A stretch of 64,000 bases of DNA, from contig JAKMXF010000044.1 in NCBI GenBank assembly GCA_024704765.1, positions 806,001 through 870,000 of the forward strand, given 5' to 3'. This document shows, piece after piece, positions 52,180-62,871 of the stretch. The notes under the pieces were generated by a model. It was given only the letters and a program-made list of their open reading frames with translations. It was not told where the DNA came from and did not search any database. The stretch comes from Oopsacas minuta. Its lineage: Eukaryota > Animalia > Porifera. Every line of letters starts with the position of its first letter. Position 1 is the stretch's first letter. The position numbers were made by a program, and so were the translations under genes.

Positions 52180-53938
52180 ATGGAAAATCGATCAAATTCT
52201 GACATAACTCCTATTGAATATCACAATGTAAGCTCCATTTTATAAATAAATATATGTACGCGTTTAATAATTCGATTACAATTTTTACAAATTTCATCTT
52301 TCATGTAGGACTACCTTGAGATTTACAAAGGAGAATATTCCTGTGACAGAGAAGGAGTAAAAATAAAGAAAGACAATTGGAAGAAGTATCTTCTTGTCTT
52401 GCAAGACATGAAGGGAATCTGTAGCAGCTTCATGATTTACAACAAGTCGACAAAAAACTGGAGGGCTGAACCACCAAAATACAAATATGACTTAACCAAT
52501 GGAAAGTTTGAAGTAAAGATACTTAATTTCTCAAAAGATCGACATTTATTCGAACTCTGTTTCCAAGAGAACGACACACGCTTCTTGCTGTCTGCAAAAG
52601 ACGAGACACTTCGTAACCAATGGGTACATTGGCTCACAACAACAAGATGTCTCGATCCTTTCACAAATTCTGGTAAGTATATAGGCATTGATATTACTCA
52701 CATTTGTCATTTCTAAACGTTTTGAGTATATTTTTTTATTTTATCCTTTCTTTATAGAATCTGTCTACTTAGTTAAAGTCCTAGAAACTCTTGAAACTAG
52801 AAAGTTTAACATCTCTGGAGCCTGCTACCTCCATCTTCTGAAAGACAGACTCCTCCTCACAAAAGTATCCAACAAATGTCTGCTAGCTGACTGGCCGCTA
52901 CAAGTTGTCCGATTTTATGCTAGCAGACATGATCTACTAAAACTGGAGTTAGGGCGTAAAGCAATGCACGGAGAGATGATTGTATATTTCCAGACTAATA
53001 AAGCAAGAGAATTATTCCATTTTATTAAATCTTCAATCTCTGGTAATCATAACGTCAGCTCTAGCATCGTGGAAACCCCACCTAAACTGAATGTGACCCC
53101 TTTTGCTGCCTCTGCTGAGTATGCTACTGTCAATTATGCTAAAAAAGCTAACAGACAGCTACAGCTGGAGGAAACCAAATCTGGTCTTGAATTCAGGCAG
53201 TACTATACACCTCCTCCTCCAATTACTAGCCAGTACGAGTCAGTATCAGTAAATATGAAGGAATTAGAGAAACAACATCCCCTGGCTAGGAGAAATTCTA
53301 AGGAGCTGATCCCTTACGAATCCTTTGAGGACTATGACACCCTTCAGCATATGAGATCTGCTTTCGGAGGCTCTCGCTCCTCCAGCAGTCAGAGTGATAA
53401 CTCAGAATCTCCCTCTACTACAAGCGAATATTCTTCTATTGGTGACTTTAAACCTTTCACATCTCCTCCTCCTCCTCAGCTGATAACTATCCTCCCCAGA
53501 CAGAAGAAGACAAGTACAGGTGCTATTCTAGATGAACCTGAATACTCCACCATTCAACCTAAGCATATACTCTCTTCATCTTCATCTTCATCTACTAATG
53601 TTATGTCACCGAAACAGATTGTTACTAACCTATGTTCTGAGTTTAGGGCTCCATTTCCTAACCCTTCTAACAGGTACGTGCACACTCAACCCAGAAAGAA
53701 GTCTTCAGGAATTGACGACACGATTATGAGTGCATTAGACACGATAACCATTCCTGACAACGGTTCTAATCCATTGATTGAAACTCCTGTAATAGTTACT
53801 TCCAAAGAACTCCCTCAGTCTCACAAAATCCCCATCAGAGGTACCTACAGTCGTAACGGTACTCGAAAGAGACAAAAGTTAAACAAACCACAGAGACCAT
53901 CTTGTATCCCAGGGATGTTGACTTGTGAAGCGTACTAG
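52180..53938 (+). CDS. DOK/IRS-like adaptor: PH domain, IRS-type PTB domain, Tyr-motif tail (3 exons)
   Basis: Exon 1 MENRSNSDITPIEYHN. Exon 2 (from about 52310) is PH-like (WKKYLLVL...FELCF...LSAKDETLRNQWV). Exon 3 (from about 52758) is PTB-like (WPLQVVRFYAS...LELGRKAMHGE) followed by YATV, YYTP, YESV, YDTL, YSSI, YSTI. Confidence 0.8.
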
Positions 53939-56900: not shown

Positions 56901-57046
56901 TCACATCACCGCCTACTTTATGGATGATTTTGTTTTAAATATTTTTTGTTGCCACAATCTAGGGAGTTAGTATTTCTTTTAATTTAGACAAATTTCCCAT
57001 TTCTAGCATCTCTATCTGGCATATTAGTCTTTATTAATCAGAAAGA

Positions 57047-60000
57047 ATGACTAACTATAAACCAAAAACTATAGTAAGTGATGATGCTATTAAATTTGAG
57101 AAAGGTTACTGGTCATCAACCGGTAGTTTCAGGAATAGACCAGATCCAGGATGGACTCACGATGCTCAGGATCTTACAGGAGGATTTGGGGTAGCCTACT
57201 CGGTAATGTTTTGTGGTTTAATTGAAATAAAAAAGAGTTTATCTCCCCTGAATGAAAACAAGAGGACAGCTATAATCAGGTTATTTATTTTGGTTTTATT
57301 ATCTTTGTATTTCACCAAAATGAAATTATGACATTACTGTGTATTGTAGAGAATCAATTCTGAGAGTACTTCATTACTCCGGAATAAGATCTCTAGGGAA
57401 AAAGCCTAAAAAGCTACCCAAACAGGTAGTTGAGTTCATTCAAGATGGAGCTGACACCTCTCTATCTATGCAATATGTCAATCTGATTATTAACTCAGAG
57501 AAGTTCCTGAGTAGTTATGAGAATGGTAAGAAGATGTTATCTCATGTTCTCAATGATGTCTCCTTCGTAGCTACTGGCATAGGAAATACTGCTGATTACA
57601 TTGGGTTAGTATTTTCATTAATATTACTAATGTACATAATTTATAAATTAACTTTTATTTTCTACGTCACTACTGTATTATTTATATAAATTTACTGTTT
57701 AGTTATGTGTCACGTGATAACAGTGTCAATCGTGCTTGCTTTGTGTTTGATTGTCTGGGCAATTCAAAACACATCGCCAATACCATGACACAAGCTTTCG
57801 AAATAAAACTCAAGGAGGTGTTAGCCAAAAATATGCAGAAAGATCTCTTGTCTAGTCATGGAATGCAAAATGGAGGTTAGCTATTCTCTATCAATCAATA
57901 TGCAATCCGAATTCAGCTTTTTGTGAGCTATATTGAATTCCATTTCCTACTTTGTCAACTCACGTAATTATACTCTGGCTAGAAAGCTATAATTTGGTTA
58001 TCTCCACACCTGTTTAAATTGTATCGGAGTTCAAAGTAATAATCATTAGTGTCACTCTATCAGGGTTCCGCATATGTGAATTGTGTAGAAGCTGATGGAT
58101 AAATATATTTAATTCTCCAAAATATGAATAATTAAATGACTATCAGCATATGTAAATAATTCTTTTATTCATTAGTTTACATAATTTTCTGAGAAGACGA
58201 ATACGAATATTAATTAAGAGTACATCACTATCTGTATAATAGATTTCATTTGTATTAATCTACGAACTTTAATCTACACAAACAATTCTTTCTTGGAATT
58301 TGTAATTTATTAATAAAATCAACGGCTGATGCAGGTTTGTTTACTCAGGAGGAGAGGCTGGAAAGTCAACTCGAGCTTTATGTATGATCGAAAATATCGG
58401 GGCAGGGTTATCTAGAATATTTTATGATTATCGCTTATAGCCATCAGTTTTATAATTATTAACTAACGAACTAAGGAACTAATTATCAACTAACGTGTTC
58501 ATACGTAGTGCATTTAATTATTCGGTTATTCCACTCTTGCATTTTTCTACAAATATTCATATCTAGTTGTGACTATTACTTCGTTTGGAGGGGTTTCCTC
58601 GAGTTTCTTTGATATGAACTCTCATATTTCCTGTGCACTATGATTGCTTGCTTATAGGTTGGGCGGATGAACATCTCTACGAAGAAGGAGCGGGTTGTTG
58701 GAACAACGTTTCTCTTCCTCCAGTCCCCCCAGCTGTCTTTGATGACAATATTTATGATGGTGTGAGGAATACACCTGATCCTCTGTACGATAACAAGAGA
58801 GGAGGAGCAGCTAGAGAAGATCAAGACCTCTATGATAACAGACCTCAAGCTAAATCTCTAGATTATTCAGATCAGGGAATATATGACAACTCTATTGACA
58901 ATTCAGGCAGAAAGGATTGTGAATCTGAGTATGATAACTGTCCTAAGATGGAGGCAGAAGATTATTTAGAGGGATTACTCAAACAAAATATTTATGACAA
59001 TAATGTGAGAAACAAGATAGCAGCTCGTAAAACAGATGAGATTATATACGATAATAAACAGGATACAAATATAAGTGCTATGCTAGATAACAAGTTCGGA
59101 TCACATCAATATGGAAATATTGAAAATCATAAAGATAACATATATCAATCTAGTGATCCTCTGTACGATAACAAATCAGGGGAGGAGGGGAGTGACAGAA
59201 AGATAGCTGAGTGTGTATACGATAATAGAATGAGTTCTCAAATTGAGAGTAAGCCACCACCTCAAGAGAATTCTAATTATGTTGAGACAGGACCTGCATT
59301 TGGAGAGAGTCCTTACGATAACTCACCGAATAATCCTGTAGCTATCCAGGAGGATGATACCTATACTAGTATGGTTACACTAAAGACACCAGAAACAACA
59401 GGTACTGTATTATTAGTACGTATTGCTTATCTAAACTAATAAGCAGGATTGCACCATGGATATCCTTGTTCATTTTAGTACCTGCAATTCTGATAAACCT
59501 TAACGTGAGATAAATACGTATTCTTAACAAAGTTCATGCATTACAGTGTTACACGGGTTGTAGATTTAGTGACATATAGTTATCGATATATTGGATGGAC
59601 GTGTAGATATGATAAAATTTAGAAGATAGGTAGTTTGTGTCCATGTATTATCCAATATATTTGTGTAGAACTATACGATAACATAAGATGTGAAGGAAAG
59701 GAAGAGAATTTATACGATTTAGCTGAAGTTGTAGAAGAGTCTTCAAATCCTAATGATATTATCCACCGAGTTAAGGATATAGTAATAGGAAATGAGGATG
59801 GTAAGCTAGCTGACCTTTATGACACACCTTTTGAAACGTTGGTGAGTATGCTCCTTATAATAAACACAGAATTTTGAATATCTCAAATATTTAAAAATGT
59901 ATTGTTGTTAAATTTGTAATTCTCTTAGGAACAGAACAACAAAGAATCATTTCAAATATACGACAATGCTGTACCTAATGAACAAACAGACAAACCTAGT

Positions 60001-60854
60001 TCCACAAATCTTGTCCCAGAACTGATATATGATAATAACCAACTTGTGAATTCTAATAAGATAGAAGTATTAAGTGATGATGACTTCGAATTCGATTCTA
60101 ACCCTGTATACGGAATTCCTGAGGAATGTCTGTCTCCATCTAGTAGTCGTCATGCTAATTTTACGGCTGAAAATATGTTCAGTGAGCAGTTAGCTGAACC
60201 TAAAAAGCTACCTACAACATCTGATGGTTAGATTCAAATGATTATATAACTAATGGCAATTTTCTAAAATTGATTTGTACTTTTGTTATTAGAGTTCGCT
60301 GAAGAAGCAGTTTATGGTGAATCTTTAATTTCAAATATCAAACCAGCGACTCCTTCTACTACGAAGATACTTCCTATCAATTCACTACCTTTCTTTCATC
60401 CTATACTCTCTCGCAAAGACTGTGAACTTCTACTCAAACAAAATGGGGATTTCCTGATCAGAGAAAGTCAGAGTAAGAAAGGGCAGTATGTGATTAGTGG
60501 ACTCCATTTAGGTCGATATCAACATCTCTTGTTCTTAACTCAAGATAGTAAGGTAGTTCATTTGATTATTTCAATCTTAAGATACATACTAGATGTTCTC
60601 TCTAGTTGTCCACTATTGGGTAGAGCCGGTGTTCTCGCTGGGCAATTAGAAAACGTCATGGATAATTGCAATACTTACTATACACTTTATTCTAGATTCA
60701 AACTAAAGAAAGAGAATTCCCAAGTGTATCTCACCTTGTTGCTCATTACATGAAGACTAAAGAGTTATTATCAACTGGTAACAACAATCTCTCCCTCATA
60801 AACCCAATTTATGCTTCTTTCCCTGACTCAGATATCTACACCATGATGAGTTAG
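57047..60854 (+). CDS. SHC: SHC-family adaptor (PTB, expanded Tyr-rich linker, SH2), about 8 exons
   Basis: PTB: RPDPGWTH...GVAYSVMFCGLIEIKKS...RESI...VSFVATG...DYIGYVSRD...RACFVFDC...QAFE. SH2: FHPILSRKDCELLLKQNGDFLIRESQSKKGQYVISG...HLLF...IQTKEREFPSVSHLVAHY. Stop TAG at 60852-54. Confidence 0.87.
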
Positions 60855-62229: not shown

Positions 62230-62871
62230 ATGATATACCTGAATTCCATCATATTTGTGTGTCTATGTCTGTGTGTTGCTACAGTAAGCACTCAATCTAG
62301 CTGTACAGTAGCTCAAAATTGCACTCGGGCGGTCCTCAATCCTCTCAGCAGCGATCAGTATGTACAGTGTGTGTTAGGGGAATGTGCTTGTGAAGGCGAG
62401 AACAATTGCTTCACATTTAATTCAACCGCTACATATTCACGGGATTCCTGTGTGCTAGATACTCGCTGCTACACCTACACCTCCTTGGGAGTGTGTGAGA
62501 GTACAGCCAGGGACTCGATGACTGCTCTTCTGTTACAGATATTCGCAGGTGGAGTAGGAGCAGCCAACTTTTATATCGGTAGGACTGACTTAGCAGGAGG
62601 ACAGTTATTCCTCTTTCTAGCACTTTTTACATTTTCATGTTGTACCTTTTGTGTAAGTTGTTGTATCAAACCAGCATTGTCATGTGGAAATAAAGATACT
62701 TACTTGTATGGGTGGCTTTGTGCTGGTGTTCTTTTTCTAGTTATGTTGATAATTCTTGTTCTCCTTCTTATTATTTTATTAATTAATCCTATCTGGTGGG
62801 CAGCTGATATGATTATTTTCGCTACTAACCAGCGTACAGATATTAACGGTTGCAGACTAAATCAGCCCTAG
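62230..62871 (+). CDS. TM2-domain membrane protein with a signal peptide and a Cys-rich ectodomain
   Basis: Hydrophobic N-terminus, Cys-rich segment, ALLLQIFAGGVGAANFYIGRTDLAGGQL (TM2 signature), WWAADMIIF. Confidence 0.8.
   Translation: MIYLNSIIFVCLCLCVATVSTQSSCTVAQNCTRAVLNPLSSDQYVQCVLGECACEGENNCFTFNSTATYSRDSCVLDTRCYTYTSLGVCESTARDSMTALLLQIFAGGVGAANFYIGRTDLAGGQLFLFLALFTFSCCTFCVSCCIKPALSCGNKDTYLYGWLCAGVLFLVMLIILVLLLIILLINPIWWAADMIIFATNQRTDINGCRLNQP

Follow-up and report, generated by a model that had tools for sequence, protein, structure and literature searches.

SHC adaptors are the textbook link between tyrosine kinases and Ras. Arrays of tyrosine motifs are known from other scaffold proteins, namely, LAT, which has 3-4 pYxN sites (where pY is phosphotyrosine and x is any residue) and condenses with Grb2-SOS, and p130Cas, in which the substrate domain contains 15 YxxP motifs that are read by the SH2 domains of Crk and Nck. 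In SHC itself, the prevailing view is that Grb2 sites are scarce and little conserved beyond vertebrates, with two YXN motifs in mammalian ShcA, one in the Drosophila protein and none in that of C. elegans (PMC11630764). Here we describe an SHC-family gene of the glass sponge Oopsacas minuta in which the linker between the PTB and SH2 domains carries 13 YxN motifs that are conserved in six related loci. The gene occupies positions 57047-60854 of the + strand in a stretch of 64,000 nucleotides (hereinafter, the window; contig JAKMXF010000044.1 of assembly GCA_024704765.1, positions 806,001 to 870,000). All coordinates below are those of the window unless indicated otherwise, and the gene features are summarized in Table 1.

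An SHC ortholog with an array of YxN motifs

By sequence comparison, the product of this gene is the SHC ortholog of the glass sponge, consisting of an SHC-type PTB domain, an enlarged equivalent of the CH1 linker and an SHC-type SH2 domain, in agreement with an earlier sequence-only reading of this DNA that had proposed an SHC-like adaptor. In the PDB, the matches of exon 1 are confined to SHC PTB chains (E 4e-7), and exon 3 aligns with residues 154-194 from the SHC PTB domain of 1shc, with the NRAC arginine and the QAFE phenylalanine both retained. The best PDB matches of exon 7 are SHC SH2 domains (1mil, 1tce; E 9e-13), and the GDFLIRES segment, including the FLVRES arginine of SH2, is kept across all relatives. 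Pfam recognizes the PID family in exon 3 and SH2 in exon 7 (values in Table 1), and in the alignment with 7 full-length SHC orthologs, the 5 domain exons fall on PTB and SH2. The N-terminal CH2 extension is absent, the protein beginning 20 residues ahead of PTB, and no hydrophobic segment that could be a transmembrane helix is seen in the exon translations.

The linker spans approximately residues 205-655 (about 450 residues) and contains 12 YDN motifs, all in the same frame (codon starts 58786, 58831, 58882, 58930, 58993, 59047, 59164, 59218, 59314, 59674, 59959 and 60028), as well as a 13th YxN motif, YGN (codon start 59110), that is in frame with them. The remaining five reading frames of the 64-kb window contain only one or two YDN each. 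Every motif listed in the sequence-only reading is thus present, and its placement of the linker on four exons is correct provided that the beginning of the first SH2 exon counts as well. The spacing that it gave, 14-30 residues, fits most of the sites: the successive YxN motifs are 15, 17, 16, 21, 18, 21, 18, 18, 32, 31, 66 and 23 residues apart, with a single 66-residue gap. When residues are shuffled within the 3 linker exons, the mean is 2.4 YxN (maximum 9) and 0.27 YDN, and none of the 100,000 shuffles reaches 13 or 12, respectively.

The linker is predicted to be disordered, with a mean AlphaFold2 pLDDT (the per-residue confidence score) of 49.7 for exon 4 and every residue below 70. The sole predicted helix, of low confidence, is AEDYLEGLLKQNIYDNNVR (exon 4 residues 99-117, positions 58954-59010); this block is identical or nearly so in all 8 sequences, amid a drifting linker. 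The composition of the linker (4.5% Gly, 6.7% Pro, 10.9% Asp, 10.7% Asn and 9.5% Glu) is not the collagen-like, Gly/Pro-rich composition of CH1, which weighs little against membership in the SHC family because CH1 is its least conserved part (PMC5624076). Counting the C-terminus, there are also two YxxM motifs that the sequence-only reading did not list, YTSM in exon 4 (59362-59373) and YTMM at the C-terminus (60837-60848); YxxM is the consensus for PI3K SH2 domains (PMC3787023). In addition, DLYDTPFE in exon 5 resembles the DxFDMxPF block (DAFDM.PF, DLFDMKPFE) that precedes SH2 in other SHC proteins and is the adaptin-binding region of ShcA (PMC5624076).

Exons 4-6 match no Pfam family, a search of the ESM Atlas for look-alikes of exon 4 gave no usable match, and a scan of JGI metagenome contigs with the exon 4 alignment yielded 600 pattern matches, of which 0 were confirmed. 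Rfam has no match in the window.

Conservation of the array

A word search with exon 4 retrieves 7 open reading frames, 46-63% identical to the query, on large contigs of ENA metagenome-type assemblies. The conservation statistics are based on six distinct relatives, with the window as the reference; these six loci probably belong to other glass sponges. The eight exons appear in order wherever the contig extends far enough, and the exon order is the same in L001-L006. Identity is 76-78% in relatives for exon 1 and 53-60% in the six relatives for exon 6.

All 13 YxN motifs, the presence of which in orthologs the sequence-only reading had named as a check, are found at the same alignment positions in the six relatives, the exon 5 site being also present in L002 and L004. 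The tyrosine is invariant at 12 of the 13 sites and is retained in five of the six relatives at the remaining one. Apart from the middle residue of the YGN site, changes occur only at site 10, where one species has YNN and another has TDN. Identity to the window is 98% in the motif columns and 49% in the remaining 363 columns of the linker (Mann-Whitney p 8e-14), and of the 23 tyrosines in the linker, 20 are invariant. The middle position of the YGN site is occupied by G, K, N, S or A, with Y and N never varying, which is the pattern expected if pY-x-N, the Grb2 SH2 rule, is what is read. The YxxM pattern of YTSM and that of the C-terminal IYTMM are kept in all relatives. Judging from these alignments, the YxN array is under strong purifying selection.

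The shuffles and the conservation together rule out chance or low complexity as the source of the array. A recent tandem duplication is ruled out as well: Tandem Repeats Finder detects no tandem repeat in the array, and similarities at the DNA level do not extend beyond the motif length. Because a DNA tandem repeat is no longer present, the array appears to be old. The sole exact DNA repeat in the array is an identical 21-nt string, TGATCCTCTGTACGATAACAA, found at 58776-58796 and 59154-59174 and encoding DPLYDNK in both places; this duplicate could be due to chance or to gene conversion.

Comparison with other SHC proteins

An exhaustive search with exon 1 gives 20 matches, including limpet, eel and lamprey SHC1, the small number being due to the short query. 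A profile search identifies 1057 SHC-family proteins, of which 120 are listed, and the PTB-SH2 linker can be delimited in 83. Among these 83 listed proteins, a sample that is mostly vertebrate, includes few if any non-bilaterians and barely represents cnidarians, ctenophores, placozoans and other sponge classes, the linker contains 0-4 YxN and 0-3 YDN. The claim that the sponge linker has far more YxN motifs than human SHC1, with its about two, is thus borne out, with 13 compared with two in mammalian ShcA and 0-4 in the listed proteins.

The sponge protein shares with the SHC1/ShcA family the PTB-linker-SH2 order, a linker with YxN motifs and an adaptin-like DxYDxPF motif, and it lacks CH2, as do p52 and p46. 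The differences are in the linker, which contains 13 YxN in ~450 residues, compared with 150-230 residues in the family, and is rich in Asp, Asn and Glu rather than Gly and Pro; furthermore, the YYND-like and Y317-like positions lack Asn, and one PTB arginine is replaced. A further SHC gene, P0026 (L009, 2854-4761), is intronless, encodes 635 residues and lies on a gene-dense contig; its linker of 355 residues has three YxN.

The carriers of YDN among the 83 proteins are limpet, oyster, apple snail, sea slug and amphioxus, with the motifs KIYDNK, NVYDNKE and LFDDPTYDNS. The amphioxus LFDDPTYDN is located at the position of LFDDPSYVN of vertebrate SHC1, that is, the Y317 Grb2 site (PMC5624076). 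Because SHC proteins of molluscs and amphioxus carry sponge-like motifs, this type of motif appears to be common to bilaterian invertebrates. In the SHC1 proteins of Patella (P0012), Ostrea (P0056) and Branchiostoma (P0079), [I/V]-Y-D-N-[K/R/S] lies between the YYND site and DxFDMxPF, but there are only 2-3 YDN plus YYN, and the linker is otherwise unalignable with the sponge array. The glass-sponge copies have 3-4 times the bilaterian-invertebrate count of motifs in a linker about twice as long. The array, then, is an expansion of the known SHC design in number and length, not in kind. The suggestion that the architecture is without precedent is therefore overstated, given the 2-3 [I/V]YDN of mollusc and amphioxus SHC, although the array itself is undescribed in the literature found: a literature search turned up no description of SHC in sponges or of a YDN array in SHC, and Shc, Grb2, tensin and SOS1 all go unmentioned in the Oopsacas genome paper with its supplements (PMC10280926).

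Candidate readers of the array

The pooled motif has the consensus [E/Q/D]-x-[I/L/V/P]-Y-D-N-[polar], with I, L or V at -1 in 65 of 88 sites and Asp at +1 in 80 of 88. For the SH2 domain of Grb2, the +2 Asn is the main determinant, and I or V at -1 is favoured, coinciding with the preference of Src/Abl kinases (PMC6077704). Because the sponge sites fit both sets of preferences, we read the 13 conserved YxN motifs of this SHC ortholog as kinase-written docking sites for an SH2 adaptor of the Grb2 type, with a probability of roughly 0.6. Under this reading, the PTB or SH2 domain would dock the sponge SHC on a tyrosine-phosphorylated receptor, and the receptor or a Src/Abl-like kinase, which the linker tyrosines suit because of the acidic residue at -3 and I, L or V at -1, would phosphorylate the linker. 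Each pY-x-N would then bind the SH2 domain of a Grb2-type adaptor, such that one SHC molecule could load many Grb2-SOS units, and the spacings of 15-32 residues would give room for several SH2 domains simultaneously. High valency is expected to increase avidity and signal gain, with cross-linked clusters possible, as in LAT-Grb2-SOS, and the two YxxM motifs would be added PI3K-type sites. For the sponge protein, we infer the phosphorylation of the linker, the identity of the reader domain and any clustering.

Several observations weigh against this reading. The density of 13 YxN per ~450 residues is only modestly higher than that of limpet SHC, 4 per ~200, and in glass sponges, Asn is missing from +2 at the positions that resemble canonical SHC sites (LYEEG after PTB and FDDNIYDG). 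Moreover, Grb2 does not demand the invariant Asp at +1. Another reader is possible because this Asp matches both pY-D/E-N-hydrophobic, the motif of tensin SH2 (PMC9194829), and a YDN peptide that binds the SH2 domain of Grb7 (PMC2131756). The phosphorylated array would, in that case, be read by a tensin-like or Grb7-like SH2 domain and would couple SHC to adhesion, the cytoskeleton or other pathways instead of Grb2-SOS-Ras, an alternative that we consider unlikely. Its appeal lies in the Asp at +1 in 80 of 88 sites, in the fact that tensin SH2 has YDNL/YDNV of PEAK1 and DLC1 among its ligands and that these motifs also emerged from a tensin SH2 peptide screen (PMC9194829), and in the binding of a YDN turn peptide to Grb7 SH2 (PMC2131756). 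However, tensin ligands are hydrophobic at +3, whereas the sponge residue at this position is mostly N, K, S, R, C or A, with V or I at only 9 of 88 sites. Furthermore, one site retains Y and N alone, and the homologous YDN of amphioxus is the counterpart of Y317, the Grb2 site in vertebrates. A tensin-like or Grb7-like reader need not exclude Grb2, because readers of pYxN overlap.

Phosphorylation might also be irrelevant to the array: the [I/L/V]YDN units could be linear motifs or structural repeats for some other partner, similar to the DPF/NPF arrays of endocytic proteins. The conservation of the full tetrapeptide, Asp included, is compatible with such a role, as are the adaptin-motif-like DLYDTPFE in the same linker and the fact that neither the contact between DLC1 YDNV and tensin nor the peptide that binds Grb7 requires phosphate. 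Nevertheless, we regard this as rather improbable, given that the tyrosine is invariant at 12 of 13 sites in a kinase-friendly context (acidic at -3, aliphatic at -1), and domains that read YDN arrays in their unphosphorylated state are not known to us. The array also lies in a region of SHC with a known role in tyrosine phosphorylation (PMC5624076).

The sequence-only reading went further and envisaged that the PTB domain binds NPxpY sites of the same protein, giving SHC-SHC networks that phase-separate with Grb2-SOS. Both sites that it named are present, NPVY at 60100 (codon 584) and the C-terminal NPIY at 60801 (codon 748), NPVY is invariant in all seven species, and the valency of 13 far exceeds the 3-4 sites of LAT. 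Several features tell against the proposal, however, which we consider improbable. The C-terminal NPIY has its tyrosine in this species only (the relatives have TPIS, RPII, NPIV, TPIT and NPIS), and its proline lines up with a conserved one at the close of the SH2 domain, so the site is unconserved and part of the SH2 end. In the PTB domain, the codon 57206-57208 encodes Met, with V or T in two of the five relatives for which this position is available, in place of the Arg of the V-R-Y/F strand found in six of the 7 aligned SHC orthologs (the seventh, P0026, has His); we take this Arg to be R67, a phosphate contact. NPVY, for its part, has D or E at -5 and Phe at -6 and is thus off the consensus of the SHC PTB, theta-X-N-X-X-pY, which calls for a large hydrophobic residue at -5 (PMC11630764). 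The case for self-association through PTB is, accordingly, a weak one.

Outside the SHC family, the nearest known counterparts are LAT/NTAL and p130Cas. As with LAT and NTAL, there is a disordered region with at least 3 YxN sites (13 here, predicted to be docking sites), and in LAT, multivalency produces clusters with SOS. LAT, however, is membrane-anchored, scaffolds of the LAT/NTAL type having a transmembrane helix with juxtamembrane palmitoylation, has 3-4 sites and lacks PTB and SH2, whereas the sponge protein is soluble and without a transmembrane helix and has reader domains of its own; it is not homologous to LAT. The similarity to p130Cas consists in a long disordered array of more than 10 near-identical SH2-docking tyrosine motifs at regular spacing; the motif there is YxxP, and the reader and the flanking domains are different.

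Gene structure and transcript evidence

The window is AT-rich (35% GC), and all 7 introns of the gene are GT..AG. Four public runs of one study contain this DNA. Contigs from three of these (X1-X3) are colinear with the window, whereas X4 consists of many short contigs, in which those with exon joints are ~1500-2000 deep, compared with 16-23 for intron-spanning contigs. Because of the exon joints and the TruSeq adaptor ends, we infer that X4 is an RNA-seq library, though none of the four runs carries an RNA label; the mix of PacBio, Nextera mate-pair and RNA-seq agrees with the methods given in the genome paper on Oopsacas minuta (PMC10280926). The eight exons are linked from PTB through the linker to SH2 by six GT..AG joints and one loose end that fits the remaining intron (60227-60292) in the X4 contigs. 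The SHC gene is expressed, and a single transcript carries PTB, linker and SH2 in this order, so the splicing of the linker exons between the PTB and SH2 exons, which the sequence-only reading took for granted, is supported. The letters that precede the acceptor upstream of the first ATG in an RNA-like contig, AAAAAACTTAC, are not found anywhere in the window, and this acceptor is likely a spliced-leader acceptor.

Table 1. Features of the SHC gene of Oopsacas minuta and the evidence for each (positions in the window)
Feature	Position	Strand	Content and evidence
AG acceptor	57005..57006	+	41 nt upstream of first ATG; X4 contig with AAAAAACTTAC before 57005
Exon 1	57047..57279	+	Start codon and first part of SHC-type PTB; joint 57279/57350
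Intron	57280-57349	+	GT..AG; joint in X4 contigs
Exon 2	57350..57604	+	Mid PTB; aligns with PTB of 7 SHC orthologs; X4 joints
Intron	57605-57702	+	GT..AG; joint in X4 contigs
Exon 3	57703..57875	+	PTB end (NRAC, TQAFE) and linker start; Pfam PID 4e-5
Intron	57876-58657	+	GT..AG; joint in X4 contigs
Exon 4	58658..59401	+	Linker, predicted disordered: 9 YDN, 1 YGN, YTSM (YxxM), invariant helix-like block
Intron	59402-59668	+	GT..AG; joint in X4 contigs
Exon 5	59669..59841	+	Linker with LYDN, LYDL, DLYDTPFE (adaptin-motif-like)
Intron	59842-59928	+	GT..AG; joint in X4 contigs
Exon 6	59929..60226	+	Linker with 2 YDN and conserved NPVY
Intron	60227-60292	+	GT..AG; X4 loose end AACATCTGAT before 60292 fits
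Exon 7	60293..60552	+	Linker end and first part of SH2 (FLIRES); Pfam SH2 3e-11
Intron	60553-60695	+	GT..AG; joint in X4 contigs
Exon 8	60696..60854	+	SH2 end, species-specific NPIY, conserved C-terminal YxxM, stop codon
Coding sequence	57047-60854	+	8 exons, 764 codons; 2292 nt plus stop codon

Neighbouring genes

The upstream neighbour of the SHC gene on this strand (52399-53938, +) codes for a PH-like piece that narrowly misses the Pfam cut-off (PH 6e-5) and for an IRS-type PTB domain (6e-12), with a Tyr/Ser-rich tail after them; from these matches, its product looks like a docking protein of the DOK/IRS kind. A gene with an IRS-type PTB is also found upstream of SHC in L003 and L005, and the pairing of the two phosphotyrosine adaptors therefore appears to be conserved. 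Just downstream of the SHC gene, an open reading frame (62230-62871, +) encodes 213 residues that open with a signal-like stretch and contain a Cys-rich part along with hydrophobic segments.

Implications for the evolution of SHC signaling

A more far-reaching proposal, which we consider doubtful, is that the glass-sponge SHC took over the role of separate docking proteins such as LAT, Gab and FRS2, so that a receptor-docked SHC, with up to 13 YxN and 2 YxxM phosphorylated, would nucleate a condensate of Grb2-SOS (and PI3K). If this were the case, a syncytial animal would keep receptor signals strong and local via an SHC condensate. Given the presence of YDN in molluscs and amphioxus, this motif may be older at the site than the YVN of vertebrates.

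An early-branching lineage has fixed 13 YxN motifs while the rest of the linker drifts to about 50% identity, which argues that the connection between SHC and YxN is ancient and that its valency is tunable over a wide range. By its high valency, the sponge SHC is also naturally suited to testing concepts of multivalent phosphotyrosine scaffolds and of condensates.

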